From: Auanema rhodensis
Taxonomy: Eukaryota; Animalia; Nematoda
Assembly (NCBI GenBank): GCA_964057225.1
Contig: OZ059896.1
Span: 17,608,001 to 17,672,000, forward strand
Direction of reading: 5' to 3'
DNA: 64,000 nucleotides
The translations under genes and the position numbers were made by a program. Positions 4,628-38,805 of this stretch are shown piece by piece. Position 1 is the stretch's first letter. Each line of letters starts with the position of its first letter. A model generated the notes under the pieces. It worked only from the letters and a program-made list of their open reading frames with translations, searched no databases and was not told where the DNA came from.

Positions 4628-7600
4628 TTATAGGCATCCAACGGGGACGCGAAGCTTTTGGACAAGGTATTCATCTAATCTATCGAGCATAGACTTTGGA
4701 AGATATCCCTTGCGAGACATTTTTCTGAACATATCAGCCTTGGTATCAGACTTAGATACACACTTGAAGACGGTGTTAACTTCAGTGGTCTTTGAAGCTC
4801 CATTAGAACACTTAAGGATTGGCTTGTCAGAGAAACACATACGGCTGTTCTCCTCGATGACGTGAGTGGAATTTTTGTGCTAAACGTTAGTAGAATAAGA
4901 AATCATAAATGAATGTAATATAAGAGCTTACTAGATCCAAGCTCGAACTTGTCCTTTGGCATCTCCTCAACAATTTCTTCCATTCCCATGTATTCGTAGT
5001 TCTCTTTCTTGCTTAAAACCATATCTTGGTTCTTGCACTCCTCGATCAAGTAGCTACGGTGGAACTCTTCGATGTTCTCAGTGTCTTCGTTGTCAGCACG
5101 ACGAAGATCGTTAGACTCCTGAAATAAATATGATAAAACTACTGCAAAATACTTTAAATGCTACATCGTTGTCGTAGTGTCCGCACATTCCGCATTGCTT
5201 GTTCTTGAAGAGTGGAGACATCTTGATCTTGGTCTCGTATCCGTTGAAGATAACGGTCAAGTATGGAAGTTCGATCTCGTAGGTCTTTTCAGACTTCAAA
5301 TAGATGTGATACTTCTCCATGGTCTTTACGTTGCTGATGATTTCGTTGTTAACCTTGACGTACATCTTTCCGGTAGAACGCTTCTCAAGCTCATAAATGT
5401 TCTTTCCAGACACGACTTGGATGGTTAATTCCTCGCTCTTATCCTCAGTCTTTTTAGCGAGAACCAAGAATTTGGGCTTTTCAGTCTCAGAGCAGTCTTT
5501 GGCAACAATGGAATAACAAGTGGTTAATGGAGCACGGTAGACAACACGGTCGAAGGTCTTCACCTTTGATTCAGAGACCTTGCACTCGGCGCGGACTACA
5601 TTTTCCATCTTGTTAATGACGTGCTTGACGTTGTGAACTGGTCCATAATGAGTTTGAATGTTGAGAACTGGAAGACGGTATGGCATACGCATCTTGTTAA
5701 AAGTAACTTCTTCATCATCCTTTCTGATGGTCAAGTTGCAGTATTGACGGTCTACTGGCTCAATAGTGAGATAGACAGCGAGGCGGTGCTCCTTCAACTC
5801 AGTATCAATAGTCTTGTAGTCAACATCCATCCAGTTGTAGATTCTAAGGATAGTCATGATATTGTCAATACGCTCCTCGAGGGCACGATCAAGATGGTAG
5901 CTAGCAACAAGGTTGTATTGGTCGAGACGGCCGGCTTCAGAGAGAATTTCATAAAGCTTCCAGCTGTTCTCAGCCTTCTTAAGGTTGTTCTTCTCAAAAT
6001 CGGAATTCTTCATCAGGTCGCTGAACCACTCACGTTGTTCCTTGCTGTGCTCTCCGTGGAGTTTAAGGTTAACGAAGTATTTCTCGTCAGATCCCCAGTT
6101 GACTTGAAGGAAACTAACGACATCACGGTGAAGTTGTTTCTTCAACTCTTCCAAGCTCCAGGAGAACTTGGGGTAGAGAGTTTGAGCGACGGCGCGAAGC
6201 TTCCAGTCAGAGGTTTCAGTCTTCAATGGAATGCGATCTGCCTCAACGGACCAACGGCAATAACGCATGTGCTCGTCACAGGTGGTTTCGACCAAGAATT
6301 CGGCCATCTTGGCTTCTGGGGACTCAGAAGATTCAAGATGCATCTTGATGAAGTGCTTGTAAGCCTTTTCGATGTTCAATTCCTTGTAATACTTGTTGAA
6401 GTGCTCTAACTCTTCCTCGTTCTTGTCTTCACCCTTGTAGAAGTCTTCGAAGTGAGGGTTGAGCATGTTTTCGACTACCTCGAAAAGCTTAGTTCTCATC
6501 TGAACAGTGTATTCACGTGGCATAACGGTCTTAACGAAGTCAAGATCGAACTTGTGGTTGGCAAAGAAGGTATAGATTGGGTGGTAGTTGTAGGTATTAC
6601 GCTCAACTGGCAAGTTGAATTCTCCCTTAACCTCAACGTCAAGTCCGGTGTTCTTGAAGTAGTTGCGGACGTAGTTGATCTTGTTCCACAATCCAAGGTT
6701 GTTCTTGAGTGTGATCTCTTCTGGCTCAGGATAGTGCTTAATTCCAGACTTCCAGACTCCCATGAAAGTGTATGGGTGTGAGCGGATTTGGACAAGCTTT
6801 TGAGAGGATTCGAAGGTCTTCCAGATATTGCGAAGAATGACCTCTCCGTTCTCCCAGGATCCAATAGTTCTCAAGTTAATTGGGAAGTTGACAAAGAGAT
6901 GTTGGTTGACTCTGAGTCCGTGTTGAACAAGACGAGTGTTGAAGGAAACCTCAACTTGGTGGGCAAGGGTGACGATTGGTTCAGCTTGAAGATGAAGGTT
7001 GAATCCAGTCCATTTCTTGCTATCAACAGGAGTGAGCTCGAGCTTAGCCTGTCCCTTAGCGGAGAAAACTACTGGGAGACGAGCTGTAAACAAGCATGGA
7101 AGTCCATTGTAGGCAGGTTTCTTAACAGCCAACTCATAAACATAGAAGACAGAGTTGAAATTGAATGGAAGGTTTTGAGCGAACATCTCTTCGATGGATC
7201 CGATCATGATTTTTCCATCTTGAATGAGGTTCTTGATGGTCTCTGGCACGTTTTCCAAGTCAAGAGGAACGAAAGCGAAGTCCAAATCACGGAAACGGAA
7301 GTAGATGACAGCGCGGGAATCGTTCTTGTTAACGGTACGACGGGTGATTCCAACCTTCTGAATGAGGCTGCGGATGTACTCGACTGGGTTGATTCTGATC
7401 TCTCTCTTTCCACGGACAATAAGGTTTTCCATGGAGATCTTCTCGTGCATCTCGAAGAACTTCTGGAGAAGAAGATCAACGTTGTGTTGGGTAATTCCGA
7501 AGTCAAGAAGGCTATTTTGCCATTCAGATCCGAATACTCCTTCAAGACTGGCGCGGACTTCTTCAGGGAGAAGGCTGGAGTTAGTGAAGATGGAGTCAAG

Positions 7601-9821
7601 CTTTAATCCAAGTCCGGCTTCCCAGAGGTTATCGTACATGGTCCACTTGTTTTGTTGAGAAAGCATAATCTTTTCGGTTTCTGGGTAAAGAATTTCGAGT
7701 TGGCGAACACGTTGAGCAAACTTGCGCTCGTGAACAAGCTTAGACTCAGCAATAGCCTTCAAACTGCTGCGAACGTAGGTGTGCATTTGACGGCTACGCT
7801 CGGTTGTCAAGCGCTTGATAACTTGGAGAATGAGGGACTCGGATGGCTCAGTGCGGAGAATTTGAGCCCAAGCGGCCATGCGAACTTCTTGAACTTCGGT
7901 TTGATCAAGAACAACAGAGAGAAGAATCTTCTGGATCTTCAAAGGCATGCGAAGACGGCGGAGAGCATAGATAGATTCGACACGGGCTTCAGATTGGTGT
8001 TGACGGTTCATGATGTACTTCTCAAGAGCATGAACGGAGATGTCGATTCCAGCGTTGGCAATGGTCTTAAGAAGAAGGACCTTCTCATAGCGGTCAGAAG
8101 CGCTGTTAAGCTTGTTGAAAAGCTTCTCAATAAGTTTCATTTTAAGTTCACGGTTGCAGATTGGCATGGAGTTCTTAGGGTTGTTGTACCAGTTGATTCT
8201 TTCAACCTTCTGTCCACAGAATCCGTTAAGGAGAGCTCCATAAGTAAGCCAGCAGGATTGGCGAACAACATTGTTACGTTGAGCTTGGGAGCTCTCGCAG
8301 AAGTTGTAGATATCCTCAGAGATATGTTCAGAAGATCTGGGGACTTGAGTGAGAGTCTTAAGAACTTGAACAGTCTTGGCGGCGGTAATTTGGTTCTTGT
8401 AGAACTTCTGGAGAAGGTGACGAATGGTTGAACGGGATCCAGCAATAGCAAGAGCATCAGTGAAGTAATCACGGACCTTCTCTTGTTCGCGCTCGCTCAA
8501 TTTGGTGAAGAGCTCAGATTTGAACCAGACCTTTTCGATTTGACGAATTTCAGTCTCAGATGACCAACGAAGAACTTGAACGAAACGAACAAAGCAGTTG
8601 GCAAACTCAGGCTTGTCAATGTGCTCAACTAATTTCTTAAGAACACTGAAGACAACATCTACACGGTTCTCGAAGCTAACGATCTCACGTTGATACTTCT
8701 CTTCACCAGTCATCATGAATTTCTCCTCAGCGATTTCGCTAGCCATGTTGTAGATGACATCCTCCTTTCGGACTTGTCCAACCAACTTGTAGTCCTTTCT
8801 GATAGGCTCTTCCTTGATGAGCACAAGCTTGTTCATGGTCTCAGCGGTGAAGAGTGGCTCAGCAGACTCAACGAAAGATTGGAACATCTGACGTCCAGTG
8901 AACATATTTTTGACAGGGATCCATTGACGCTTATCACTGTCCATTCCAAGGGTAAGTTTGTGGTGAACATAGTCGGTGCTATCCTTCTTGAGAAGGTCAG
9001 TAAATCCAGAATACAATTCTGGGACGTAGCTGCAGTTGTCGAAGTTGACGTACTTGATGTATTCGAGTTCAGTCTTGTTCTCGAAGTTCAAAACGTACTT
9101 GACGTCACATTGACCGTAGAACATGCGCTAGAAATATCACGCTTGAAATAGAAACTCGAAAGATAACTCATACCTCGTGAGCAACAAACTCCTTGTAGTC
9201 AGAAACTTCACTCAAAACTTCATCGTCATTTTTGAACAAATCGACTCTCTTCTTGTTGAGATTGACCTATTCATGAGTTTATATCAGAATACGGTTTTAA
9301 AGAACTAACCTGGAGCATATCAACGATGCTCTTTTTGATGTTCATGGACCACATGTCATCCTTGGTCAAGAACTCGATCTCGTTGACCAAACCATTCTTG
9401 TAGTTAACACGGAAAGGAAGAGTCAAGAATTCCTTGAGCTCCTGCAACACAAAAAGAAAATTCATAAAATCATAAAAAAATGAAAAGAAAGCAATAAAAA
9501 ACTTTAAATTAAACTTACAGCAGAATAACTGTCTTGGTCAACGGTTTCTCTGACAATCTTTCCATTTTCAATGTTGTTAACAAGAATATTCTTAGCCTCG
9601 ACGTAGAGCCATTCGTTGTCCTTAGTAGGAGTAACAATGATATCAGCAGCCAAATTAGCGTAGCTACGAGAATCAGAAGAGAGTGGAGTTCTTGAAGTCA
9701 TCTTAGACTCATATCTGTATGTATATTGACGTCCATTGGCAAATCCAAAGTTCTCATTAGAGATTGGGATTGAAGCCAGAGCTAGACTCGCGAGGAGTCC
9801 GACGGCAACCAGAAGCCTCAT
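4628..9821 (-). CDS. vit-6: Vitellogenin (yolk lipoprotein precursor), vit-6-like, ~1640 aa, 6 exons: 9821-9519, 9441-9310, 9266-9174, 9127-5165, 5118-4932, 4879-4628
   Basis: Signal peptide MRLLVAVGLLASLALA; Vitellogenin_N-like start (FANGRQYTYRYES); 1337-aa ORF with KTIANAG; RGKR convertase-type site; VWD domain (VKTFDRVVY...CYSIVAKDCS...QCGMCGHYD); Cys-containing tail (MCFSDKPILKC...VPVGCL*). Introns are short and GT-AG. The last junction has a one-base phase mismatch (see findings). The vit-6 subtype is inferred from recall of the C. elegans protein. Confidence 0.93.
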
Positions 9822-9908
9822 ATTGCTGAATCTGGTAGTTTAGAGGAGAGGCAGATCCAATCAGATGCTACACACACTCAGACAACGGTATTAATGAATT
9901 ATCAAGCG

Positions 9909-9961: not shown

Positions 9962-10570
9962 TATTGGATGAACATATGAATGACAGCTGCCCGCTCTTAG
10001 AATGCTTAGACCCTCATATCAAAGTCCTTTAACATACATAACTTTAAATTTTCTTTTTCTACATTTACTCTTGCACAATTTCATCATTTATTTGGTTATA
10101 ATTAAGAAATGATTCTGAACAAAAGTATTGAGCAAGGGAGAATGGGGGTGGTTGAAATTGGAATATTAAGGAGATTCAGAATTCGATTAGCTCCTACTAT
10201 GAGCACATTATATACAGATTTTAATATTATTTTTTTAATTCCTCAAGTATTACAATTATTTTTTTGAATATTATCTTTTTAATTTTGATTTTTTTAATGT
10301 TATATAAGTTTTTTATTTAGAAAAAATGAAAACTGCATTAATAAGAAAAGATATATGCTGTAGTTGTACATATATTTTATATTTTTATAATTATTATCCT
10401 TTTCTTCAACTATTTGATTAATCAGAATTAATAATATGAATATTTCTATTTCTATATACATACTATATATATATATATGTAATTTATCGAAATCATTTAT
10501 TAAATTGTGCATGAAATTCAACAATTACATTTTGAAATCTCTCAATTTATTAAAGTTGTTCTTCCAAGCA

Positions 10571-13460
10571 TTAAGCTCTAACTTCCAGTAAAAGTGTATC
10601 TGTTTTAACTTTTTTCTTGCAAAGTAATGGTAATTCTTTGGCAGCACGTTGAGCCTTAAAAATTTGATTAGAAAGTGTATTCCTACAAAAACATATATTA
10701 CCTCTTCAGGTGTTTTTCCTTTTGTCTCAGGTAAATAGTAATAAAGAATAATGGCTGAGATGATACATGGGGGAAAGAAGAGCAGAAGATAAGCTAGAGG
10801 TCCTCCTAATACAATCTTTAATGGGAAATATACAGCAAGCAGAATGGATCGTCTGAAAATCAATTTGATCGGATAAGATCTATCATGAATACGCTGTAAA
10901 TTTTATGAAACAGTATGAGCTTTTTCTTGGAAACCTAATGAAAATGAACGTACACTCCATTAAAAACTACATTCACCCATGTACAAGCTGCTCCACGACC
11001 ATTCTGAGAGACTAATTCACCTAAAAACAGCTGATAAGCTGTTGTTGTTGTAAGTTGTAAGTTTCTAACCTGTTATAAAGAATGATATGGGAGCAGGTCC
11101 AACACAGATTACAAAGTTGAAAATGCAAATTGCTAATACAACTCCCCATCCAATTATAAGATTCTTAAATAAATAAATATATATTTTTTTATAATTTCTT
11201 TATTAACAACCGTTTATTTTGGTCTTTTAAATTTAAGTTAAAACGTACACCAGATTTCTCGAATAAGATCATAAACATGTAGATTATAACATTGATAAGG
11301 CCCAACAATCCAAATGTACTCAGAAGTAATGGTCGTCGTCCTTTACGATCAATGAGGAAGGACGAAAAGATGACTCCGAACTAGAACATCGTTTTTGGTT
11401 AAAAATAACTTTTTTTTTTGTTGATATGGTTAAAATGCTTTTCTATTTAATGATTAGAATATTTTTTTTGTTTTTTGTTTGGATTCCTTCTCTCTTTCAG
11501 TCTACTTTTGCAATCAGTTTAATCTTACCACAGTCATCAAACAGAAGGTAATATTACCAATAGAAGCTTCAAGAGATGAGAGTCCCACGGATTGAAGAAT
11601 TTCAAAGGCAAACGCATTGATAGCTATAATATATTTATATTATCTTTAAATTTCTGATACAGATAATCAGTTTCTAACCAGCAATTCCACTCAATGTGGT
11701 AGCTGTAATGATTGTTGAGCCAAGGAGTGTTCCTCTTAATGATTGCTTATCCTCAAAATCATATTTCCATAACAAATTTATAACATGAAATTATAATAAA
11801 CCTTGAATACAGAGAACAATCCAAATGTTTCCTGTTGTCCATTAGTCTGCTCCAGCTCAATAATAAGCTTTTCAGCGCTGCATTCTGTAATTTTTAATCA
11901 AATTTTCATATTTAATATAGTTTTTTAAATCTAATTTTTTTAATATACAATCAAATAAAATAGAATAGACTTTAATTATATTTTTTTGTTGTTGATAATA
12001 ATTGAGTTAATTGTAAGTAATTGGTCTAACCATCAATATCATGATAATAAATGACAGACAATTTGGCTTGTTCTCGTTTTGCAAGTGATAACAAATATCT
12101 GAAAAAATAGAATTAAAAAATAAAAATTCTTATAATAATCTTAATAATAAAAACAAAAAAGCAGTAATGTCATTCAAGTTATGGCCTTATTTGCTGTTTT
12201 TTTTAAATATTAAGATAAAGCCGTCAATCATAGATGGTGTACCTGCATTTTCATCTCAAATCTCTCTTTCTTTCTCTCTTGCTCTCTCTCTCGCTCATTT
12301 GAATGTATATTATCTCTTAATTTTTATATAATTTTTTATAAATTTGAAACTTTATTTCGAATATTTCAGTGATATATAGTTTTCGATTATCTGATAACAT
12401 ACCCTGGACTTTCTTTCATGAAAGCACAAACAATTGTGACAATTATGGTGAAAACAAGCTCAATGGCATATAATATCCACCAGTTATCTTTTGTTCCCAA
12501 AACCTAAAAATATTGTTAAAATGATAATTATTGGTTATTTGATATGTTGAAACTGCTTTCTGTTACATCTTTTCTCACTAATATTATGCAATTTTCATTC
12601 TGATAACAGTTGAAACAGCAAAATCGTATGAAAATGTAATACATGCCTGAGGCATTGCTACAGTAGCTCCAACAACTAAAGCTATTTGTATCATAATTCC
12701 AGTAGCTAATGAGATCACCCCACGACATCTGGCTGGGCTGCAAAAATAAATTAAAGATATACCTTATTTTTTATTTTGAAACTTTGAATTTGACTATACT
12801 GTATGAATTAATTAAATTCATTTAGATCATTACCTACATACCTACATTCGGTTATAAATAATGGAGCAATACCAAGTGAAATTGATATTGCTGCTCCAAG
12901 TATAATACGAGAAACGGCATATAGTATATGATTAATGATCTGAAAGTATTTTATAGTTAATATTAGTTACTTTGAAGTATGTTATACAAAAAAGCTTATA
13001 ATTGATAATGCACATCCAATAGATTGGAATATGAGTGAAATCACTAAGCCTCGTGTTCGTCCAAATTTATCAGCAACATATTGAATGAGAAATGCTCCAA
13101 TTGTTGCTCCCCAAAACAATGTGGATACAATAATACCCCAATTGGCCTGAAAGTTAAATAATGTTTCATAAATGCTATTACATATGTATATTTAAGTTCA
13201 AAGTTCAATTGATGAGTTATATGATAATTATTGTAAATTAAAGCTAATTGACATACTTCAAGTTCATTCGTTTTTAAATGGATTCCTTGATTAATTAGAG
13301 ATGAATTAGTAAATTGAATGAATGCTTCTTGAGCTGGATTAGTAATCAACAGCTGATATCCGAAATTGAAACCGCCGCCTACAATAGTAAAATTTATTTC
13401 AACAAGAATTGTAAATAGTATTCGATGACGAAGTGTACTATTGAATTCAGAACATCATAT

Positions 13461-13688: not shown

Positions 13689-14972
13689 CTAAATATAAAT
13701 AAATTAAATTCTTATACAATATTTATGTCATTTTTCATATATTATATTTAATAATTTTAAAATAAAATGTTTACTGAATTGGAAATTTTCATTTTTTTTC
13801 ATTTTATGATAGGAACATCGTTACATGTAACTCAAAGCATCTTATCGATAATTTGATAAGAAAAACACATGCAGATCAGCTAGTTACATGCTTTAAGCAA
13901 TTTGATTGAACATTTTGAAATAGAATAATGGATATGAAGATAAAAATTTTCATGAACCATACTTCAATGAAACAATGAAATTTACCTTTTTCCAAAAATC
14001 ACTTTATCTTTCATTGAGATTTTCTTTTGTTATCTGAATATGTTTAGTAGAAAGATAAACGAAACAGTCTCAAAAAAGCTCAAAATATCAAGTTGAATGA
14101 GAAAAGTTTGAACATCTTTGCTTTAGATCAATCAAGCAGCGGATTACACATTGTGGAAATGTTGTTGAAGATTGGTAAATATATTGAAAGAAACAACCAA
14201 AAAATTTCTGTCAAAAGGTGTCAGAAGGACAATCTTGAATTGAGAGAGGACGAAAGAAAAAGAGAAAATGAGGGATAAAAGATTTTGGGTTTAATGGCAA
14301 GATGTCACGTCAAAAGGTAAGATATGTTGAGTTCAGAAATGAAAAAGATGTCACAAGATTCGCTTTCTTTCTGACCTCTCTATCCTTTTCTCAAACTTAA
14401 TGGATGAGTTCAGTCCAAAGCTTTTTCCAATCTTCAATTTTTGTTCATCTTTAAGTAAATGAAGATCAGACAAAAGAGAAAAGGTTAATGAAATACGATT
14501 CTTGATAATAGAACTGTCTGTAGGCTGTATGTGTGTGCATGTGTATTGGAGTATCTTGTATCTTCTAACAGAATCCCCCCAATTCTCCATTACTATTTTC
14601 TTATGAACAATATCAAAAAGCATATATATTTCAACAAAGCTCATGATGTAACCCTTTATGTTCAAGTATAATCAATAGTATAACAATTAAGTCTTCAATA
14701 ACAAACAGTTCAACGATTTTAAAGATGAAAAAACTTCATTGTTGATACTACCGCAGAAGCATTTCTATATTACGTAGCTTCTTATTCAGACATACCCAAT
14801 AGAACAACTTTCTCAGGATATTTTCATAAAAGCCATACAATCACAATATGTTTTGATAATAATATCCTGTCTGTGATAGTATGAATGTAAAGAAGAATAA
14901 GGACGGGAGGAGATATTACAGAGATCACTAAATAGATATGTGAAAAGAAAAAAAAGAGAAATAGATTGAAAG

Positions 14973-14975
<3 letters not shown>

Positions 14976-15033
<58 letters not shown>

Positions 15034-15098
15034 CGAGAAAGATAGAGAGAGTAAGAGAGAGAAAGAGAGAGAGAGAGAGATAGAGAGATAGAGAGAGA
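14976..15098. repeat. (AG)n microsatellite, poly-G and degenerate AG tract
   Basis: Direct inspection. Confidence 0.9.
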
Positions 15099-15568
15099 GC
15101 TGCAGTAGAAATAGAGATAGGTAAATGAAAAAAAGAATAAGTCAACTAAAATATAATTATGTATATTCGAGTGAAATAACTGAGTTTCACGAACTACATA
15201 CACAAGTACAATACGTGATGATTGTAAAGAAATGAAATAAGAAAACAGATTTTTCATAAATTTTTGTATTTCAATCCAGAATTATATGATATAATCTTTG
15301 GCTTAATATGAATATTTAATAAGATCTATAGATATGTATTTAAGTATATCTAAACATTAGGAAACATTACATTATTAAAAAAAATTATATACATATATAT
15401 CATTATCTGTTATACATATATAAATATAAATATAAATACATACATACATATTCATATTAATCTATATTTAATGAAATATTCAGATTATTACTTATAATAG
15501 AATACATAGAACTATTTTATTATTAATTTAATATAGTAAGTAGTGGCTTCTTCTTCATGCTATATGCT

Positions 15569-18121
15569 TTAAACATTAGTTGTAGTTCGACCATGCGGAG
15601 GTCCCACTGTCCAATCACGTGTTATATTGTTAAAATAGATATTTCTTTCTTCTTCCTGAAGATAAAAAAAGAAAGATAAAAGATGCTATTTGAGAAAAGT
15701 AATATCATTCAAGAACTTAGCCAATATTCAATTCTACTTTTTTCTTTTTTTACTAGCAAATAGAAAGCTTCTTCTTCATGTTTTAATTATTTGCTTCTTT
15801 TACAAAAGGTCATCCTTCTTTTGCTTTTGGAAAATCGAACAAGAAGCTCAGTGTGCAAGAAATAAAGAAAGAAAGACAGAGAGAGAGAGAAAGAAAGAAA
15901 GACAGACAGAGAGAGAGAAAGACAGAGAGAGACAGAGACAAAGAGAATAAAAGTAAAAGATATATTATAAACTATTACTTTTGTTTTAATTAAGTTATGC
16001 CCATATCGATCACGTATTGGTTTTTTAGATAAATCAGCATCCACGGAAACGTTTTTACCGAAAACCTTAAAATATTTAATTAAAATAAATAATTATTAGT
16101 TATATTTTACTCGTTTAAGACTTTTCTTAGTTTCTTCAGCACATGTTGGATCCTGGCAATGTATAAGAAATGGCACTGTTAAACCATAACTGAAATTGAA
16201 AAATCAGTTTGAAACTGTAAGTCATATAATTAAATATATTCTATTATAATCCATATGTACAAAGAATAATAAGAATGGTATATATATATATATCATTATA
16301 GTCATTTTAGTACTATTTTAAATTATGGCCTCATAGATTATAATAATATAGTTAATACATGATTATAATACAAAATATCAAACAGATGTTATGAGATTGT
16401 AAATGCTTCATCGAATACATTTTGAATGTTCTATTGAAATACCTGATGCAAGCATAGTTAAATCCCATCTGCATCCAATTCTTCAAGTTGGCATTTTGTG
16501 ATATTAGTTCTGCACTTATTAAGAAGCCGCATAATACACTGAAGATTGTAATACAGATGATAACTTTCTTGAAGAACTGAAATAAGAAGAATATATAAAA
16601 CTATATAGTAATTAACTATATGAAATAGTTAGTTTTATATAGTATTTATATCAAATAGTAATTGAAGAATAAGCTAAACTTACAATAACAGTTTTAATAT
16701 TTTCAACTATTTGATATCGTTGACTTAGTGAATATGGTGATTCTTCACAACTAATGCTTGAAAATATTTTATTATATTGTTTATTATTATAATATCCAAG
16801 ATAAACACAAATCTATAAATATGTGTTATTAATAAAATTTAATTCAATTTGTAGTTTTGAAATATAAAAAAAATATATTAAAAACTTACAAGGAATGCTG
16901 TGATATTAGAGACAAATAAAGAGATGATATGATACCATAATGATAGTAATTCTGAAAAAAAATAATATTATAAATATTAGAATAAGAGAATATGAATAAT
17001 TATATTTTTAAAAAAATACCTAAAATGAATACAATTGAAGAGCACACTGACCATAACAACATAATAAGAGTTATAGCATATCCAATATGTAGTCGATGTT
17101 TTCTTTCATAATCCTATAATATTATTATAGATTTAAAATAATAATATATATTTTAAGAAAAATAATCTCTTCCTTTTGTTTTAATTTATAAGAAATTTTA
17201 GAATTATCCAATCAAATATAAATACTTATAAGCATGCATCACTTATGTAATGTGTTATACATATATGTGACTAAAAGGTTAATCTTTTTTTTTTTTTTGA
17301 ATAAGTTTTAACAAAAAAAATTTTATGATAAAGCTTAAAATATAAAATTAAAATATTACATTCATATAGTATGTTGCCCATAATCTTTCAATTGTAATAA
17401 ATAAAGCGAAATACAATGCAATAAAGAGTAAACAGTTACGGATGAAGCTGGCTATTGAAAATACAATATCATTAGAAAGATGTTCTAAAATGTTAAATAT
17501 TTTTTTTGAAATTGATTAAAAAAATAAAACAAACCATCAGTGAGATCGATCATTTTATATATTTGAATTAATCGAGCAAACATTTGAACAAAATATTGTA
17601 GATAAAGATTTTTTAATAGTAATACCAAATTAGGATGATAATTAAGTGTTACTATAAAATATATTGACATTCCATCGATAATATAGCTAAAAAATATATT
17701 GAAATACTTATAATAGTTTATATAAATATCAAACACAACAACACAACTATAATTTAACTATTTACATTTATAACAACATATAATCAAATGTCTAAAAAAA
17801 ACAGTTTTAACGTTCTTTTCGTAAATTTCGAATTTAATATTTATTCAAATTGAAATTTGAATTTAAGATAAATGCTCAAAGCTCAAGTTGAAGTTTCTTT
17901 TCGAGCAAGATATCTAAGATTGATTGAAACTGCTTTTTCACATATGCATACACTATTCTAAAAAAAACATTGAATAAATACCTTAAACATATAAAAAATG
18001 TTTCTACAAACAATAGAATATTGAAGATTTCTACAGTATGATTATCAGCTGAAGCTGTTCCATTGATTAAGGATATATAACGCATAGTAGTTACGATGTT
18101 TGTACTAAATAAAGATTGCAT
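15569..18121 (-). CDS. Nematode serpentine chemoreceptor (7TM GPCR, Sra superfamily, Sre-like), multi-exon; start at 18121 or 18085
   Basis: Spliced exons give YHPNLVLLLKNLYLQYF, ITIERLWATYY, DYEKKRRLHIG, YSLSQRYQIVENIK and C-terminal IYFNNITRDW...TTNV*. These motifs are typical of Sra/Sre-class receptors. The exon 1 (to 17982) / exon 2 (from 17686) junction is in phase. Confidence 0.8.
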
Positions 18122-19938
18122 TCTTAAACTTTTTTTTCGAGAATAATTGGATGAATATAACGATGACGATGCCAACGGCGACGACGACAACTGCGTTTAG
18201 AAGGACTGAAAGAGAAGGAAGGAGAGAAGGAGGAGAAAGAGACATGGAGAGAGAAACAATGAATTTGCATTAAATATACAATACATTTCTGAGATCAAAT
18301 ATCAAAGTTATAATAGTTAATTCATTTGATCAAAAAAACGGAGATATGCGTTGTGATTAGGAGTTCATGATAAGCAACTTGTTAATTATATTTACACTAT
18401 TCATATAAAAACTTAAATAATTTATAAAATGTAATGAAACAATGAAACAATTAAGATCTTCATCAATTGTATTGTTTTTGTCTTTCACCAAAAGCTATAA
18501 ACAAAATATTTTAATAATTTTTGATAGAAAATACATAAAATTGGAATAAAATACAAAAAGATAGTCTATGTTTAACTATTTGTATAGCTAAATATTTTAT
18601 ATTTTCATAATTAATATCAAATGTACATCTCTAATATTATCTATATTGGATCATAAACATTATATTGATATGAAATTGACTTTAGAAAACAACAAGAACA
18701 GTAAATTACAATTTATTTCTGTAGATTTCAATTGAATATTAAGATAAATTATATATTATATGTATATAATAATATTATTTATTATAGTTTATTTTACATA
18801 TATAAGATGTATATACTTACACATACTCTTTACAATACATTGATAAAGCATGATAACACATTACATCTTCCCTCAATGTTGTATTTTATCAGAATAGATC
18901 TACCTTGTTAACTGTTTTCGAATTTTTTTTTTTTTGACAAATTGTCGATTTTTCTTTCGAAAGTTAACTTACTACTACAATTTTAAATTTTAGAACTCTC
19001 ACGAACTTAAATTAATTTTTTTATAAATTTGTACACATATTGATAATGAAATAAAATAGAATAAACTACATATGTATTCATATCCATATATATTATATTT
19101 GAATGAAAATTACAAATATTGAAGGCATGATATGAAAAAGAAAATTGAGAAAAATGCTGTACTTTTTACATATAAATACATGAAAGTTTCATTTATGCTC
19201 TAGGGAATACATAAAAGTTTGAAAGATGCTACTCTTATATCTTTACTTGCTTGATTATTATAAACTAATAGAAATCATCTATAAATAGATATATAATATA
19301 TATACAATATAATATATAATATATAGTAATAACTTGTATTTTAATTCAATTTAAAATCTATCGAAAGAATCTATCAACTAAACCAATTTTCATGTGATTC
19401 TCATTCTCGATGGTAAATCAGCTCTTAGTTGTTTTCAAAAAAAATTTTTTTTTGAGAAAATCACTGATCATTTTAATAGAACTTTAATGCATTCAAGGAT
19501 GAACTAAGTTGAATTATAGCAAGTATATAGCCGAAAAGTACTAGAAATGAGGTAAAAACGAAGTTATGTTACTCTCGTTATGGTGGTAACAAGCAGCTGA
19601 AGCGGATCACAAAACGAAGAAGAAGAATAAGAAAAATATGGCAAAAAGTCTAAGCATATGAGAGGAAGAGGGGGGGGGGAGCAAGAAGGAACAACACGGT
19701 AAGCTTCAAAAGATATTTTATATCATATTCCTTGTCCATTTAATTGTCCATTTCTTCAAATATGGAAGGAAGGGATTTGTAAAGAGATTTGAATAGATGA
19801 TTTAGGAAAATGCGAAAAAAATTTTCCAAAATAAACAAGATTGGAAAAGAAAAAAAGAACATCAAACATATGTCCGACAACGAAAGTTAACAAAAGAAAT
19901 TTTCATTTCTTGAATAAGTGATTTATTTTATTAATTGT

Positions 19939-19979
<41 letters not shown>

Positions 19980-20291
19980 TAATATATTTTATATTATTAA
20001 ATATGAATAAACAAATAGATATATATGTACATATATATGAAAACATATATAAATAAGAATCTTCAGAAATTCAGAACAATTTTCACTCTATTTTTCGGAG
20101 AAAAATGGTGGGAAAATGAAAAAAACCTTCTTGCTTGCTGCAGAATATTCAAACTGATTATTGAATATGTACCATAAAATTTAAAAACATCAAAAGGAAT
20201 TTTATTTTTGTAGTTTAATGATATGTTTTGTTGAAAGTAGATGGATAATGAAACATTGATTGTCATATAAATATTTTAATAGTTCGATAAA

Positions 20292-20294
<3 letters not shown>

Positions 20295-20342
<48 letters not shown>
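20295..20342. repeat. (TC)n microsatellite
   Basis: Pure TC run. Confidence 0.95.
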
Positions 20343-20345
<3 letters not shown>

Positions 20346-21111
20346 TTCTTTTTACAAGAAAAAAATTAAATGGCATTAGCTTGAGAAGATAGTTTCGTTA
20401 TATGAAAGTTGGGGCAGATATAGAAGAACTGATGAAGATGGGAGGCGACAAGGCTAAATGAAATAAAGAGACGGGCAACATAGGAAAGCTTAAAAGTTGA
20501 AACAATTAAGAAAAGTATTATATGTACGAACATATACTAGTTAAGAAAAATGTTTTGATGATGAAATACAATATCATGTTGAAATATTTGAATACAAGAT
20601 AACTATATATGTATAATTAGACAAATAATTAGCAATTATCTTTGAAATTTACATTACTAGAGACATATATATATATATATATATAGATATAGATATATAT
20701 ATTAATAAGTTATTTTGAATATTCTAATATATAATTTTACATGTTATAGTCCAATTAACGAATAATCTTAATTCAACTACTTATATCATAAACCATGACA
20801 TCATCATGACATGACAAATGCTACGAAATCATTTTGCTTGTATCTTTGATCAAATTTACATAACCTTTTTTCATTTATATACTACTTTGTACAATTTTAA
20901 ATAAGTTATGTAACATATAGATTTTATATTTTATATTTCTTCAAAACCTTTATACTATTTTACTACTTGTTTCTCTGTTTTCATTTGTTCCCTTACAGTA
21001 TGAATGCGGGTTATAAGTAAGGTATAGAGAGTTCAAACAACTTAGTACAAAAGTATTTCCGATTAAATGATTTTTATAATATTTTATCTTTTTCTCTCTC
21101 CCTCTCTCACC

Positions 21112-21666
21112 TGTACCAGTGTTTCTCAATGTGTTTATTCATATAAAAAAATATTTTCTAATAATTATTAAAGAAAAATATTAATTTAGTACTATATTTC
21201 TAATAAAATATTATAAAATAGAATAAACATAATCTTAAAACGATACGATTTGCGATCAAAAAATCGAAGTTCAAGCTCCGCCCCATCCTGGTTTTATTAT
21301 ATAAAACGGACAGTTTGCTTTTAATCGCTTCAAAACCCCGAGTTTTCGGAACTCTTTCTATATTCTTTCTTCAAAAATCATTTGAACAACATGCACCAAG
21401 GAGTTGCCCGTCTAAATAAGCGGAAGGTGACCTTCTGTGAAAATTCTGAAAATCAAACAAAACGAAAGGAGCGAGCACCAAAGTTTTATGGTGAGTCCAT
21501 CTATCTATCTTTCCCTCTCTCTTTCTCTCTATTTCTTCCAATTACTTATTTGAATTTACTTTTCAGAACCTTTTCGGCCACGTCAGTTACAAGCTTTGTC
21601 TTCCTTTGATTTAACCCTTGAAACTGTGTTTGAGGAAGAATTTTCTGAAAAAAATGAGAATTCATC
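21112..21666 (+). repeat. Left arm of a 555-bp inverted repeat
   Basis: Reverse complement of 25462-26016. Coordinate sums at both ends equal 47128 (no net indel), and ORFs 21382..21609(+) and 25519..25746(-) translate identically. Confidence 0.97.
21276..21306 (+). promoter_or_regulatory. GC box (CTCCGCCCC) plus TATA box (TATATAAAA) upstream of microprotein copy A
   Basis: CTCCGCCCC at 21276-21284 and TATATAAAA at 21298-21306, ~85 nt before the ATG; typical Pol II core promoter spacing. Confidence 0.6.
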
Positions 21667-21676
21667 CAATGCTTAG
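21391..21676 (+). CDS. Putative 69-aa two-exon microprotein, copy A (exons 21391-21490, 21567-21676), with RVxF- and LxxIxE-type motifs
   Basis: aacaacATG start, G|GTGAGT donor, pyrimidine-rich 76-nt intron, TTTTCAG acceptor; the frame stays open after splicing: MHQGVARLNKRKVTFCENSENQTKRKERAPKFYEPFRPRQLQALSSFDLTLETVFEEEFSEKNENSSNA*. GC box and TATA lie upstream. Confidence 0.65.
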
Positions 21677-22304
21677 TTAGAATTTGTAACTAAATAGCAA
21701 AAGGTATTGTCTTTGTAGCCTTTAACAAATAAGAAAACATATTTCTTGCTTTAGAAGTCGGTTAAACAATTTTTTTTGTTGTTGCTTCATGATTTCAACA
21801 TGTTGTTGCTGCTGCTACTGCTGGCTAAAGGAAGTATTTATCAGAAATACAAAGCCTATGGAAGTGCCAAAAACACGAAAGACACATCATTCTCTTTGCT
21901 CATTTCTTATACGTATATATATCTATATATATATATGTGTGTATGTTAAGTACATATAATTCTATTGTCATTTCCTTCATCTCATTATGTGTAGTGTTAT
22001 TGCTGAGCTTGTCCTGGCAAAATCGAAAGAATGTGTATTCTATGAATTACATATAGAAAATCAGTGAAAAAAATCGAAAAAATGCATTTTCACCCCCCAC
22101 TGATCATCATATTTGGGACATATATTTTGAAATAAAGACATCATATCTCACGTATTTTATGAATGTTAGTCATCATTTTTGTATAATTGAAACCAGTTTG
22201 TACATATATAGTTTGAAATATCTATGAAAAGATTATAAACCTTCAAATAATTTTTTTACTGTGTAAAAGAGCAAAACAAAGGGTAGAAAGAGAAAGAGAG
22301 AGAA

Positions 22305-22359
<55 letters not shown>

Positions 22360-25300
22360 GAGAAATGATGATAATGATGATGATAAAACCGTATGCTAAT
22401 AAACAAAAAGAAGCAAAAATATGAATATATAATACATAAATCTGATGCTTGCAAGAATATTTTTAAAGAAATAACAACACAAAATAGTATAAGATACTGT
22501 TGAATTGAATAATTAAGTAAATTAAAAGAGCTAATACTCCAATAAACCATATCATTATCATTATTAATTTTTAATTTTAATCATTTCTAAGAACTTGTAC
22601 AATATCTATCGACAATTATTCATAAATCTTCTGGAGTTCTTACAATTACAAGATTTTTTGAATAATATTTACAATATATAGATATAATATAGTATTTATA
22701 TAGTTTATATCATATAACTAATCAATTAAAATATATGTAAATAATTTTCATTTTTCGTTTAAAGTATGACTATGACTATGAGAGTAGTTGAATGAATATG
22801 TAATGTTGACATTTATGTTCAAATGTCCAGTTAAAAGTTGTATGAACTTATACAACATTTTATCTTTAATTTTTCAACTTTCATCAATATTACATACAAA
22901 ATATTTTAAAAATTAAAGGTAATGTTAATTAAATGAAAGAAATGAATTGAAATAAAATGTTGTTAAAATCAAAATTGATACGTAGTTAATTACATATGTA
23001 TGTTTATAAGTATTTATTATTATTATATTATATTTAATTTCTTTCTAAATATATACTATATGTATTATATATTTATATAATATTTATTCAAATTATAAAT
23101 ATATTATATAGTTTAAAACGTAAACTGGTAAATAATTGTTATAAAACGTTTCATATATATACTTATAATATTATATTAATACATATTGTTTATTGAATAA
23201 ATATATGAAATATATATTTTTTGTTGTATATAAATTATATTTACTATTATTATATAAAAGATGAAAATTAAAATATTGTAATATAATGGATTATTTATCA
23301 ACATATTCAATATTTATGTTTCAAAATATGATATAAAAGGACAATTTATATCAATATTTGAAATTTCAAACTTCTGAACTTTATGAAATCTGATGAAATA
23401 CTAGTGTGAACAGAAGCGAATGACCAACAAACAAATACATTATACAAGTTTTTTCCAAAATATTATAGAATATTTTCCAGAATATAAATATTTTTTTCAT
23501 CATCATCATCATATAATAATACTTACTTTTGCTATTAACAGATTATTATTCTTTAAAAATCATTCTAATGTATGAGAAAGAAATGCCAAAGTAAACAGAA
23601 GACGAGGAAATTCTGCTACCAAAAAAATTCTCTACCATGTTGACTTGTGTCTTCTGTACTTTTGACAGTTTTTTTAATATTTTCATCCCTTACGTATTAT
23701 CTTCGTCATTATTTCAAATGATAACTAAATATTTATCAATATTTGAAACAAATAGATAGTTAACTAGTATAGTACCTTCATTGAAAATACATTCAATTTT
23801 ATACTTTTAACAACAAAAAAATTATTTTGAATCAGTAAAGTATTATATTATTAGTAAAATAATAATAATAAACTTTTTTTTTCGGCTGACGTGGGTATAG
23901 TAGGTTAGTAGAGTGTATGAGAAACGTAATGAAAAGGTAGAGACACAGTAGTACAGGTATGAACGAGGGATGTTACGATAAAACAAAAAACCTGCAACAA
24001 GAAATAATAAACTTATTTTTTCTGTTAGTTGATGGAAAGAGAGAACAGAGAGGGGGAATACCGGTAATTTGGGTAATATATCAAGATTAAGTTCATCTGG
24101 TTTTTTAATCACGAAATGTTACACATTTGATCATATTAATGTGTGTATTTCGGAACTTTTGTAAATACTGGCTACCTACTTACATAGTGCTGCTAAGGTC
24201 GCGTTTGTTGCTGCTATAGCAGCTGATGCTGTTCACAAAAATTGGATATTAATCTTCTGAACTTAGTGGCCAAATATAAGAAAAAATGTATTTAACTGTT
24301 CGAACTCTATTTTAGAAAAAGAAGGAATAAGTAAACGAAATAAACTTTGGAATTCATACACTCTGATCGCTAGGCTGTTGCTCTTTTACAATTTTCTTGC
24401 AAACGGGGAGAAAAAGAAAAAGAGCAAATAAACGAATACAAAATACAGTGTGACATAATTGTATGGGAAAAAAATTGTTAAGAGCGGACTTTAATAAATT
24501 TTATTTTCTCTCTTTCCTTAAAACCTTTTTACACTATGTCTCCATTTTTTAATTATCTACCTTTTTTTCTCTCTCTCCCCTCCCCTCTCTCTCTGTATCA
24601 CTCTCTTTCAATGAGAATTCAAAGCCCATTCATTTGTGACTATCAAAATTCTCTTCCTCAGCCGTTTAAACGTTATATTTTTGCTCTCTCTTCTCCTTCT
24701 CTCGCACTCTTCTATGCATCTCTTTACATTTCGTCATTTGAAATCATTTTATGTCATTTTTTTCAATCAGCTATCCCCTCACATTCTGATCTTTGAAATA
24801 ACCGTACAACGAGACTTTAAAGTTTGAACCAATTTTGCGCTAAAACTAGATGGTCAGTTTAATTTTCATTATATGTATGTATGTCAAATGATACCAGTAA
24901 AACATTTTGAAAAGAGTAAGATGCGCTCAAACGGAAAATTGTAAAAAATTGACAAACGAAAAATATTACTGATTGGTTCCACTTGTCATCTTGATACTTT
25001 TACAAGGAACTATAGCAACCTTGCAACTTTTTCGGCAACAAAAGCACGAAACTTCAAAAATGTTACATGAAATTGAAGGAAAAGAAACAGACGATACTCG
25101 AAAAAATATATGTATGTATATATATCTGCATGATATGTATCTGCTATTTCATAGGAAAAATCAAGGTACACACAGTATAGACAAAGAGTTTACTTAAAAA
25201 TATTGAATACAATAAGCAATAGCGTGTTAGACTTCTGTTGTTCATACAGAATGTTGAATTGTGAAACTGATGATTCTTAGGCTTCCCGAAAAGACTGTCG

Positions 25301-25457
25301 ACGGAATGATGTTCGCATGAAATTACTCATTCTTTTCTTCCCTTCAGAAGCTTCTTTGAGAACTTATGACAAAAGACGCAAGTTTTCTACAAAAAAGACA
25401 CAAAATAAATGAAAAATTGTTGAGAAAACAAACCAAAATGCTCTAGCTGACTCCTCA

Positions 25458-25737
25458 CTAAGATGAATTCTCATTTTTTTCAGAAAATTCTTCCTCAAAC
25501 ACAGTTTCAAGGGTTAAATCAAAGGAAGACAAAGCTTGTAACTGACGTGGCCGAAAAGGTTCTGAAAAGTAAATTCAAATAAGTAATTGGAAGAAATAGA
25601 GAGAAAGAGAGAGGGAAAGATAGATAGATGGACTCACCATAAAACTTTGGTGCTCGCTCCTTTCGTTTTGTTTGATTTTCAGAATTTTCACAGAAGGTCA
25701 CCTTCCGCTTATTTAGACGGGCAACTCCTTGGTGCAT
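25458..25737 (-). CDS. Putative 67-aa two-exon microprotein, copy B (exons 25737-25638, 25561-25458)
   Basis: Same as copy A except that it ends ...EKNENSS* with TAG at 25460-25458, just outside the repeat arm. Confidence 0.65.
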
Positions 25738-26016
25738 GTTGTTCAAATGATTTTTGAAGAAAGAATATAGAAAGAGTTCCGAAAACTCGGGGTTTTGAAG
25801 CGATTAAAAGCAAACTGTCCGTTTTATATAATAAAACCAGGATGGGGCGGAGCTTGAACTTCGATTTTTTGATCGCAAATCGTATCGTTTTAAGATTATG
25901 TTTATTCTATTTTATAATATTTTATTAGAAATATAGTACTAAATTAATATTTTTCTTTAATAATTATTAGAAAATATTTTTTTATATGAATAAACACATT
26001 GAGAAACACTGGTACA
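25462..26016 (-). repeat. Right arm of a 555-bp inverted repeat
   Basis: Reverse complement of 21112-21666; the spacer between the arms is 3795 bp. Confidence 0.97.
25822..25852 (-). promoter_or_regulatory. GC box plus TATA box upstream of microprotein copy B
   Basis: Mirror copy of 21276-21306 within the inverted repeat. Confidence 0.6.
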
Positions 26017-27399
26017 CGAGTCTAGTGTATATAAACACCCCCCGTCATCTATCGGATGCTACTCTTGTGCTATCTTGTTCGATTTAAATAAAAACACCTT
26101 TAAATATTCAAATATTTACTAAAAAAAAGACCATTAGGCAGAAACAAAGCAAACTTATAATACTGTTTCTTCATCGTCAATGAAATAACAAATCTAAATC
26201 AATTAAATTCTGATAAAACTATTTTAGAAATCCGCATATAAGAGAGGAAATCATAAATAATTTTCATACACTTGGTGGCTAAATGACATCGTCTGTTGAA
26301 ATAAAATAGAAGCCTAATGGTCAAGATGGATATTATCCCTCTAAGGAATAAACAAAGCCATGATAAAGAGATAGATTTAGAGACAGGGAGAAGGAGAAGA
26401 AAATAGTAAAGAAGTAGAAGGGGGAACGGAAAATGTTAACGAGCAAAACTTAGAAAGTTTTTCAACTTAAAAAGTAAAGTGCTCAATCAATCTATAATAA
26501 GAAAGAATTTATATCTATTTATGCATTGTTTTTTGAAAACGTTTCAACTTTTTTTCGAAACAACGAAAAATGACATCATCATCAAATAGATAAAGATGCA
26601 ATTTTGGTTCAATAGACGATTCAGCCATTTTGAAAACGAAATTTCAAATTCAATGACCAATGCATTCTATAGAACCTTTGAAGATAGGAAAAAAAATGAA
26701 AATGAGAAAAGCTAGACGTATTTTCACACCAAATCTGCTACCAGTTAATACTAGACCAGCAAAGCCAGCTCAGGGAAGCGAAGTAAACGAGCAAAAAGGC
26801 GGTAAAAGCTTTCTTAGAAGAAAAAATAAAAAAAATTCAATTGTTTAAGATGTATTCTTCAAAATGAAATGCATAAACTCTTATAAGATTGATTGATTTC
26901 AGAACAAAATAAACTAAATATAAAATATTTTAAAGCTATCAGAAAGACACGTGACAGTAAGTGTGTCTAACTACTGATGCATATCTAGATTCTGGGATTT
27001 TTCCCTACTTCTTGGGTAATGGGGGACAATAAAATTGAGAAGCACATAAAAGGCGACAATATGCGATACGTGAACACATTAAGCATAACAATTATGAAAC
27101 GGTTAGAGGCTAAATGATACAACAAATTAGTTTTAAAATTATTAGCTGTTTCAATTGGTTAGAGAGCGAGAGAGAGAGATAAAGGAGATGGAGAGAGAAC
27201 CTTAGAAGTCAATGTATAATCAAGAAATTATGCAAAAAATGAATTTTAAGACAGCGAATGAATTAGCACAGTATATAGCAATGAAAACAAACATTTTTAG
27301 TATATCAATAAAACTAAAATCATTCTATGATGAAGTGCATCATGATACATCCTTCTACATCAGATTCATCCATTATTCATAGAAGACTTTTAACCGAAT

Positions 27400-27615
27400 T
27401 TACTTATTGTCCTTAATGTTTCCACGGGATAATGAACGAGCTAGAATAGAAACTTGTTACAACCTCTCTTCATTAATAACTTATTTACCTCGTCCTTCAG
27501 CTTCAACTTGAAGTCTAAGCTGACGGCTAATTTCACGAAGTCGAGCAGCTGACTGTCCTGTCAAACTTGGCTCTCGTCTATCGAGTCCAGCTTGGAAAGC
27601 TTTTACAACTCGAAT
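27400..27615 (-). CDS. mca-3: PMCA distal alternative C-terminus (exons 27615-27489 and 27440-27400)
   Basis: TTCCAG acceptor, then IRVVKAFQAGLDRREPSLTGQSAARLREISRQLRLQVEAEGR, a 48-nt intron and ARSLSRGNIKDNK*. Phase 0, compatible with the LQTQ| donor at 32164. Confidence 0.88.
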
Positions 27616-28611
27616 CTGGAAAAAAGTGATACTGAAAGCGCTCAACGCGTGACACACACAAGGCATATTCAACTAGTAACACAACAAAGCAGCAGATTCA
27701 TGTTATATAAAACCTGCAGAACAGAATTGCTAGCATTCAAACTTATTACATTGATTCAATTTTTCTAAGAAATTCTTTAAAACAGTTACTACAAGCACAA
27801 GAAAATAAATATTTCTACCATTACAGACAACGAAAACGAGCTAAATTTGATCGTACACAAACTTTTTGTCCTGTTTGAACAGAAATAAAAATTTTTAAAT
27901 TTCAAAGTTTTTCCAAATGTTCGACCGCTTAGATCATTTGGTACGATTCGGTATGATTAAATTTTGATAACGATGAATGCAATGTAGAAATATGATGGCA
28001 ATTCCGTTCAGCGAAGTTAGTTTCTCAGCAATCAGATGCAGATTTTGGACAAAAACGAAGTAATATATACGAATGTTTCATAATTCTCTGATTGAAGCGG
28101 TTGAATCAGTTGTTGTCACTGTGTTTGTATCCATCTATGAAGAACAATAACAAGAACAAGAAGGAGTAGAAGTAGAAGTAGAAGAAACGGTATCGGAACT
28201 TCGTAGAAAACTCAAATCACATAGTGCGTACAACCATAGATACTAGTAAGTCACTTGTTAAAAGCAAATAATTCATGTTTTAAAAAAACATAGAAAGCGA
28301 AATAATGAAGCCTCAAAAAAGTAGAAGGCTTTCCAACAAAGTTGCATATAAGATGTAACTTTCTGGTCTAAAATAATACAAGACTCTAGACAGCCTTGAA
28401 TAGAAGAAACAACATGCGCATGAGATGTAAAGCTCATTTTCACAAACAGAAAATAATAGACACACATACACACTGCACAGGCACAACAGACACACTATCC
28501 ATATTCGGTAGTCAACTACTCATTCTCAAGTTTCAGATTAACAATTCAAAAACTCAGTGTGGAAACTTTCAGATGAGAAGTTGGCCACTTTATCTGGAAA
28601 AACTCGCTTAC

Positions 28612-28680
28612 AGCCTGGTCAGTAGGGGCGCTGCTCAGTGGAACAGGAATTAAATGATCAGATCGTTCTCCGCCAATCAC
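28612..28680 (-). CDS. mca-3: PMCA 69-nt cassette exon VIGGERSDHLIPVPLSSAPTDQA
   Basis: TTATAG acceptor, GTAAGC donor, symmetric phase 0, 23 open codons. Matches my recollection of a C. elegans MCA-3 isoform insert. Confidence 0.8.
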
Positions 28681-29887
28681 CTATAACCAACCAGGACCGC
28701 ATAAACGAAATTATACATAACATGATAGGTGATGCCAAAATCAAGCATCAATAGATCTTATTTTACCTAGCCCATTTCAAAGAGCAAATTTTATAAATCA
28801 TTCTTTACATTCGAATTTAAGCTTGTGTTGTTTGAGTGTTCTCCCAATATCATAACGTACATTGAACAAATAGGAATTAAGTGTCATAATAGCGTTTTCT
28901 AATATGATTTTCATCGCATTTTCAACAAAACCTTCAACTGCAGGCTTGGACACACTTATAGGACACGATTGGTGCTTGGAAGGAAGTTGACGATGTGATT
29001 ATTATTTTGAACCAATGAATTACAACAAAGGGACACAAGAGGGAACACAGTCCAGAAATTAGAAGAAGAGACATGAAAATCATAATAATACCATTTATTT
29101 GGTAACAGGTTACAAAAATAGAAAATATTACCTCACGCATCATAACCAATACGAAAACTACTTAAACAAACAATAAGATTTTGAAAGTACATTGTCATGA
29201 AATTAAATAATTAAATAATGTGCTAACATAATGTAAGCTAGATTTTCCCCAAGGGAATAAAAAAACGCGCGTGTGAAATATAACAATCCTCTTCATAAAG
29301 AAAGGCCAAAACATTAGAGGAAAGAGTGTTTCTGCCTTAAATTTACTAACAAAATATAGAGAAGAGTTTGGCAGTATTCAAGGAATACAGGGTTAAGTAA
29401 TCCTGGTAGAAAAAAGAGAACTATAAGTTAAAACAAAATAAAGAAACTATAGTGCTGTTCTGAAAGGGTTCTTGAGGAGGCTTGATGAGGGCAGAAGGGG
29501 CATTAAATGAACAAAACATAAATAGATCTGTTTCTCTGTACATCTTTTTTTATCTAAAAGACTAAAAGACTTATTGAGCTATGCACTACACACCGATCAA
29601 AAACACGCTATAATGGTTTGAGGCAAACGATGAGAAATTTCTGTCAAGCTATCAAAAGCAGTTTGCCTAAACCTTTTACATTCTGACAACCGGGACTTAA
29701 AATAAACAAAAAAGGCAATGGAGTTTTTGAATACAAATTCTCTTACAGAAAGAAATCCCATATTTCTAATTTTTCTGACACTGACTGAATATCAGCAGAT
29801 AAATATCTGAAGGTTTTGGGACACATCTGCTATCTTCTATATCTATAGGGCTATTTTTAAAAATATGTACCACATACAGAAAAAGGA

Positions 29888-38805
<8,918 letters not shown>

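Follow-up and report, generated by a model that had tools for sequence, protein, structure and literature searches.

On the reverse strand of the window, by which we mean the whole 64-kb stretch of Auanema rhodensis DNA that was analysed, a vitellogenin gene occupies positions 5111-9839, with one open exon of 1337 aa carrying Vitellogenin_N, open beta-sheet and VWD domains. Its best relatives (Oscheius VIT-6, strongylids and Pristionchus) are about 31-33% identical, and no Auanema match was obtained for it in the database search. Open frames at about 10500-13450, also on the reverse strand, resemble the exons of a sugar/MFS transporter by eye, two single fragments giving no Pfam match, and exons at about 32300-38750 of the same strand belong to a gene resembling those of plasma-membrane Ca2+-ATPases (P-type), the DKTGTLT phosphorylation signature lying in the open frame 34603-34860, with a weak match to the Pfam E1-E2_ATPase model. 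The 18 kb at 14000-32000, between the transporter-like and the ATPase genes, are very AT-rich (GC 0.22-0.34) and gene-poor, and the only coding sequence detectable there is the pair of microprotein genes with which this work is concerned.

Two convergent gene copies in a perfect inverted repeat

The first copy of the gene lies on the forward strand and is composed of two coding exons. Exon 1 (21391-21490, 100 nt) begins with the ATG at 21391-21393, supplies residues 1-33 together with the opening base of codon 34 (Glu), and encodes KRKVTF and the basic clusters. A phase 1 intron of 76 nt (21491-21566, GTGAGT...TTTTCAG) separates it from exon 2 (21567-21676), which supplies residues 34-69, among them EPFRPRQL, SFD and LETVFEEE, and ends in a TAG stop at 21674-21676. 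Left unspliced, the locus reads as a 75-aa ORF with a TTG start (21382-21609). The initial annotation had proposed that removal of this intron turns the 75-aa frame into a hydrophilic 69-aa protein, basic in its N-terminal half and acidic in its C-terminal half, and in-silico splicing reproduced this product: the net charge is +7 over residues 1-40 and -6 over residues 41-69, the GRAVY value is -1.18, and KRKVTF and LETVFEEE occupy residues 10-15 and 51-58, respectively. The GC box, the TATA box and the A-rich start context which had been described with the two motifs were also located. In fact, the ATG is set in AACAACATG, a TATA box TATATAAAA is found at 21298-21306 (forward strand), with a TATAAAAG box at the matching place in Auanema melissensis, and the GC box CCGCCCC (21278-21284) is included in a 32-nt block, CGATCAAAAAATCGAAGTTCAAGCYCCGCCCC, at 21253-21284 of the forward strand. 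Within the window this block is confined to the two gene copies, and 31 of its 32 nucleotides are identical in the A. melissensis orthologue discussed below (88-119 of its contig), where the flanks are unalignable and a TATA box again comes next; the distance from the block to the ATG is 107 nt in the A. rhodensis window and 87 nt in A. melissensis. The block is presumably a candidate transcription-factor site.

A repeat search of the window revealed an inverted repeat whose 555-nt arms are 100% complementary, with 3795 nt between them. The left arm (21112-21666) encompasses the promoter, the 5'UTR, exon 1, the intron and the coding sequence of copy 1 minus its last 10 nt. The right arm (25462-26016) brings with it a second copy, on the reverse strand at 25459-25737, of which the initial annotation made no mention: its ATG is at 25737, its exon 1 (25638-25737) and 76-nt intron (25562-25637) are identical to those of copy 1, its exon 2 spans 25459-25561 with the stop at 25461-25459, and its promoter block lies at 25844-25875 of the same strand. 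The two copies are in convergent orientation. Since the identity of the arms ceases 10 nt upstream of the copy 1 stop, the product of copy 2 has 67 aa, ending in ...ENSS and lacking the final Asn-Ala of copy 1, and the two copies have unrelated 3'UTRs. Copy 2 has a GTGAGG donor at its stop codon, but a further exon downstream was considered and discarded, since splicing at that site would at once produce a new stop. The spacer between the arms is AT-rich and no ORF was found in it; scans of 20100-27500, spacer included, gave no Rfam family or tRNA, and a local tblastn search, with positions 20012-20053 masked, gave no further copy of the microgene in the 64-kb window. The arms are perfect, intron and promoter included, whereas the synonymous sites are saturated with respect to the orthologue, which points either to a very recent duplication or to ongoing gene conversion from arm to arm.

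Long (CT)n / (GA)n tracts at 20292-20355 and 22278-22366, in inverted orientation and about 1.9 kb apart, bracket copy 1, and the CT-rich runs which fill the intron of the microgene and the nearby DNA resemble them. As regards transcription, four sequencing runs, all from one 2019 study and taken to be RNA by guess, contain 33-52% of the words sampled from 20900-22300.

The orthologue in Auanema melissensis

An ORF lodged in perfect 555-nt inverted repeats, with 3.8 kb of AT-rich non-coding DNA between them, may be no gene at all: it could have arisen by chance in the long terminal inverted repeats of a foldback element or non-autonomous DNA transposon, or else be an assembly artefact. Such a reading would also fit the fact that the only counterpart found outside the window sits on a 473-nt orphan contig. 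Nevertheless, the arms themselves do not behave as those of a transposon, since no target-site duplication can be read at their ends, no transposase ORF exists in the spacer, and the element is present in only two copies in 64 kb. Moreover, the coding content was assessed independently of any relative. A codon log-odds score, trained on the clear coding sequence of the window against its AT-rich non-coding DNA, amounted to +0.18 bit/codon for the microgene in frame and was negative in the other two frames. Likewise, a listing of every two-exon ORF reaching 60 aa with GT[AG]AG donors and TTT[TC]CAG acceptors, over approximately 43 kb of otherwise unannotated sequence on both strands, gave exactly two, these being the microgene and its inverted copy.

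The decisive comparison came when 1.84 billion cluster representatives were searched exhaustively with phmmer. One credible homologue was returned, a protein of 70 aa (E 3.9e-17, residues 7-67 aligned to 7-67) deposited in GenBank as CAI4220318.1, "unnamed protein product [Auanema sp. JU1783]". Auanema sp. JU1783 is Auanema melissensis, and the gene lies on the 473-nt contig CALQYR020000763.1 of assembly GCA_943334845.2. BRAKER2 annotated that genome from RNA-seq hints, a transcriptome assembled by Trinity and a protein database, TSEBRA being used for the merging (PMC9984802). The expectation that standard annotation would miss such a gene was, therefore, half right: BRAKER2 did call the orthologue, which was annotated but left unnamed. 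The remaining two matches of the search were spurious, both being long proteins made of repeats, with 9 matching stretches in one and 7 in the other, whose significance arose from the summing of short repeats (RFYEKYNP..., RLNKREVTF...).

The structure of the A. melissensis gene reproduces that of copy 1. Its ATG is at position 206 of the contig, its exon 1 is also exactly 100 nt long, and its intron (47 nt, donor GTAAGC, end CACTTCAG) interrupts the same codon, Glu34, in the same phase. The introns themselves are unalignable and, at 76 and 47 nt, differ modulo 3; the spliced frames nonetheless agree, and the unspliced reading in A. melissensis meets a stop three codons into the intron. At the protein level, 44 of 69 positions are identical (64%). 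The nucleotide differences are distributed 15/15/44 among the three codon positions over 67 codons and, between the A. rhodensis copy and A. melissensis, pS is saturated (0.90) as against a pN of 0.22. The conservation is frame-specific: in exon 2, 25 of 36 residues are identical in the spliced frame, whereas the other frames contain internal stops and reach 11-13. On these comparative grounds, purifying selection acts on the locus as a protein-coding gene whose splice both species require, and splicing is further supported by the RNA-informed annotation of A. melissensis. The spliced protein-coding gene put forward by the initial annotation is thus borne out, and a two-exon nematode gene is almost certainly real. 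In turn, the transposon reading of the palindrome is ruled out by the lack of target-site duplication and transposase together with the coding selection; that no gene exists here, whether for this reason or through an assembly artefact, is highly improbable and effectively refuted by the position and phase of an intron kept while its length changed, and by the codon-position and pS/pN figures.

As a separate observation, the A. melissensis contig includes about 205 nt ahead of the ATG and ends 8 nt beyond the stop, so that its extent is roughly that of an arm of the palindrome. A short-read assembly would break at the edges of a repeat, so the A. melissensis gene may be duplicated too.

The search for other relatives was extended in several directions. 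Word-indexed protein searches, run both with the peptide and with an alignment of the two sequences, gave nothing past the A. melissensis protein, and exact look-ups of six product forms (ATG or TTG start, spliced or unspliced, both copies) found none of them in a 15-billion collection. No Pfam family was assigned by hmmscan to either orthologue at E up to 10, and no match to PDB sequences was found at the same limit. The ESM Atlas features returned no relatives, its structural matches resting on a model of pLDDT 0.25 and being meaningless, and two metagenome scans gave no match, the custom pattern used having been confirmed to match the A. melissensis contig. The family is, as far as detectable by sequence, confined to the genus Auanema; short disordered proteins diverge quickly, and the searches are therefore no proof of absence outside the genus. 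Whatever its function, comparative evidence alone establishes here a lineage-restricted microprotein gene housed in a perfectly homogenised palindrome.

Conserved segments and motif content

The 69- or 67-residue protein is best described, from model predictions, as intrinsically disordered. AlphaFold2, run on the two-sequence alignment, gave a pTM of 0.19, with one short helix at residues 38-45 and no structure at residues 1-37, and the ESM Atlas model of the A. melissensis orthologue had a pLDDT of 0.25; the disorder which the initial annotation attributed to the protein is in keeping with both values. Along the chain, the residues identical in both species are grouped in blocks, namely K10-F15 (KRKVTF), A29-P35 with R37-L41 (APKFYEP.RPRQL), S46-D48, L51-V54 with E56-E58 (LETV.EEE) and E64-S67.

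Two of these blocks carry the docking-type motifs on which the initial annotation was centred. The strict RVxF pattern of protein phosphatase 1 (PP1), [HKR][ACHKMNQRSTV]V[CHKNQRST][FW], is matched in both species by RKVTF at residues 11-15, and the block KRKVTF has all six residues identical, with about five synonymous and no replacement changes. The PP2A-B56 pattern, [LMFI]xx[ILV]xE, is matched in both by LETV[FA]E at residue 51, followed by EE; the sole variable residue in LETVxE (Phe/Ala) falls on the free x position of the motif, and position 4 is Val instead of the preferred Ile, a substitution which is tolerated and weaker. Furthermore, Thr14, inside the RVxF motif, lies in an R-K-x-T basophilic-kinase pattern in both species. 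In the homologue search that had been suggested as a check, the sole detectable orthologue keeps the frame and presents both motifs at identical positions. As for accessory PP1 motifs, neither orthologue has a SILK or MyPhoNE match, and the hydrophobic pair expected 5-8 residues after RVxF is absent, residues 16-28 being polar or charged; SILK, MyPhoNE and the hydrophobic pair are accessory for PP1 binders and not obligatory.

The extent to which such matches could occur by chance was estimated with 300,000 composition-matched shuffles of the peptide. The strict RVxF pattern appeared in 1.5% of them, the B56 pattern in 17.7% and both in 0.25%, while the more specific [LF]ET[IV]FEE appeared in a fraction of 3e-6. 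In addition, a hand calculation gave p ~0.02, with two species, for the eight motif-defining positions all being among the 44 of 69 identical ones. The conservation of the motif positions is thus modestly beyond expectation for two sequences, and suggestive.

These figures have to be weighed against the fact that the best-conserved block belongs to neither docking motif. The central segment APKFYEP[FL]RPRQL, which the initial annotation did not mention, is identical at 12 of 13 positions, with 9 synonymous changes, one replacement and a pN of 0.03, being the most conserved part of the protein. It is accordingly conceivable, although unlikely, that the gene is real and the motif matches coincidental, the protein working through this block (with SFD) upon a partner unrelated to phosphatases. 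Apart from the strong constraint on the central segment, such an explanation would draw on the readiness with which short linear motifs arise by chance, on the initial annotation having been drawn from many scanned ORFs, and on no Pfam or PDB relative tying the protein to phosphatases. It would have to accept, however, that both motifs were kept at all their defining positions with variation only at the free one, that their joint chance occurrence is as low as the 0.25% given above, and that LETVFEE is one residue off a validated B56 ligand.

The motif content also admits a different function, KRK...KRKER fitting a conserved bipartite NLS just as well. A bipartite-NLS pattern (KR, 12 residues, then KRKER or KKKEK, four of five residues basic) and a class-1b NES-like pattern (L41-xx-L44-xx-F47-x-[LM]49, LQALSSFDL) occur at the same positions in both species, and the only predicted helix, at residues 38-45, overlaps the NES-like stretch. 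The microprotein might then shuttle between nucleus and cytoplasm, carrying or trapping a partner in the manner of PKI. The parallel with PKI is one of analogy only: this is a portable regulator of about 70-75 aa, disordered, with an enzyme-docking pseudosubstrate or short linear motif and an NES-like leucine pattern, but its target is a kinase and it shares no sequence similarity with the microprotein. The NES and NLS regular expressions are, nevertheless, very permissive. Moreover, NLS linkers tolerate substitution, so that the invariant V13-T14-F15, kept through some five synonymous changes, would be left unaccounted for, and the conservation of LETVxEEE would remain unexplained as well. 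Shuttling as the main function is for these reasons considered improbable, while, as a property of the protein, it can coexist with PP1 binding, for example in a PP1 export or import factor.

Proposed phosphatase docking and its known parallels

The interpretation which we favour is that of a disordered short-linear-motif protein, encoded by two convergent copies, which would bind at least PP1 or B56 through RKVTF or LETVFEEE; judged from the sequence, its chances fall a little short of even. According to this proposal, RKVTF, near the N-terminus, would dock into the RVxF groove of a GSP-type catalytic subunit of PP1, and LETVFEEE, towards the C-terminus, into the LxxIxE pocket of a PPTR-type regulatory subunit of PP2A-B56, so that the protein could act as a small phosphatase regulator, adaptor or competitor. 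That both PP1 and PP2A-B56 are bound is rather unlikely on present indications, even though the conservation of the motifs and the near-identity to a validated B56 ligand make the dual-docking reading plausible and strengthen it. The central block, in turn, might provide a further PP1 contact, an inhibitory segment or the site for a third partner.

PP1 and PP2A-B56 docking respond oppositely to phosphorylation: RV[ST]F motifs phosphorylated on Ser/Thr lose PP1 binding, and LxxIxE binding rises with negative charge. Opposite responses of this kind are the topic of PMC6715587. In the microprotein, the R-K-x-T basophilic context of Thr14 within RVxF means that phosphorylation of this residue would probably switch PP1 binding off. 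Since the B56 motif already has Glu at its position 2, B56 docking would be constitutive, PP1 docking alone being switchable at Thr14. PP2A-B56 bound through the C-terminal motif may then restore PP1 binding, in what would be a cis version of the PP2A-B56-to-PP1 relay. In its most complete form, the proposal would be that of a minimal 69-residue dual-phosphatase adaptor which binds both enzymes at once, with B56-PP2A keeping Thr14 dephosphorylated and so licensing PP1, as a self-contained PP2A-to-PP1 relay switch, and with the palindrome pair being homogenised by gene conversion, possibly for high or germline-specific dosage; this full scheme is considered quite unlikely.

To our knowledge, work on the PP1 / PP2A-B56 relay has so far been limited to large scaffolds, among them KNL1/BUBR1 and Repo-Man. 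Repo-Man (CDCA2), Ki-67 and KNL1/BUBR1 also combine or relay PP1 RV[ST]F and PP2A-B56 LxxIxE docking, and the microprotein shares with them a phosphorylatable Thr in an RVTF-type motif following the basic KRK, with a B56-type motif on the same polypeptide. Unlike the 69-aa microprotein, however, they are large chromatin or kinetochore scaffolds, and the KiR-SLiM extension past RVxF (a hydrophobic pair and FDE.LP) is missing in the microprotein, where CENSENQ follows KVTF. The literature search gave no description of a microprotein, from nematodes or otherwise, in which RVxF and LxxIxE occur together. If the protein did bind as predicted, it would be the smallest natural polypeptide known with both PP1 and PP2A-B56 docking motifs, offering a compact model for the coupling of the two phosphatases and possibly a ready-made peptide tool in nematodes.

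The closest parallel for the C-terminal motif was already pointed out by the initial annotation, which cited (L/F)ETIFEE sequences of Tantalus/PRR14 type. In fact, FETIFEE in PRR14 and LETIFEE in PRR14L are the B56alpha-binding cores of these proteins, and alanine substitutions, including EE>AA, abolish the binding (bioRxiv 10.1101/788356; 10.1101/2023.04.29.538809). LETVFEE of the microprotein departs from the PRR14L core only in the change of Ile to Val at position 4, Glu2, Thr3, Phe5 and the following EE being in agreement. The likeness is confined to the motif: PRR14, PRR14L and Tantalus range from 585 to >2000 aa, against 69 aa, and the RVxF of the microprotein is not known in them. Membership of the Tantalus domain was considered and rejected, the Tantalus Pfam model being unmatched by either orthologue at E up to 10 and no sign of common descent having been found.

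With regard to size and general character, the microprotein resembles the small PP1 inhibitors, namely Inhibitor-1/DARPP-32, Inhibitor-2 and Inhibitor-3 (PPP1R11/Ypi1), which are, as is the microprotein, small, heat-stable-type and disordered, with a basic RVxF in the N-terminal part. No Pfam or PDB sequence match to any of them was obtained at E up to 10, and the RRRRPT phospho-site of Inhibitor-1, the SILK and HYNE of Inhibitor-2 and the CCC of Inhibitor-3 are not present in the microprotein. As a lead, the segment FYEP.RPR of the central block, 16-19 residues downstream of RVxF, bears what we take to be a loose resemblance to IYEKPRAF of Inhibitor-3.
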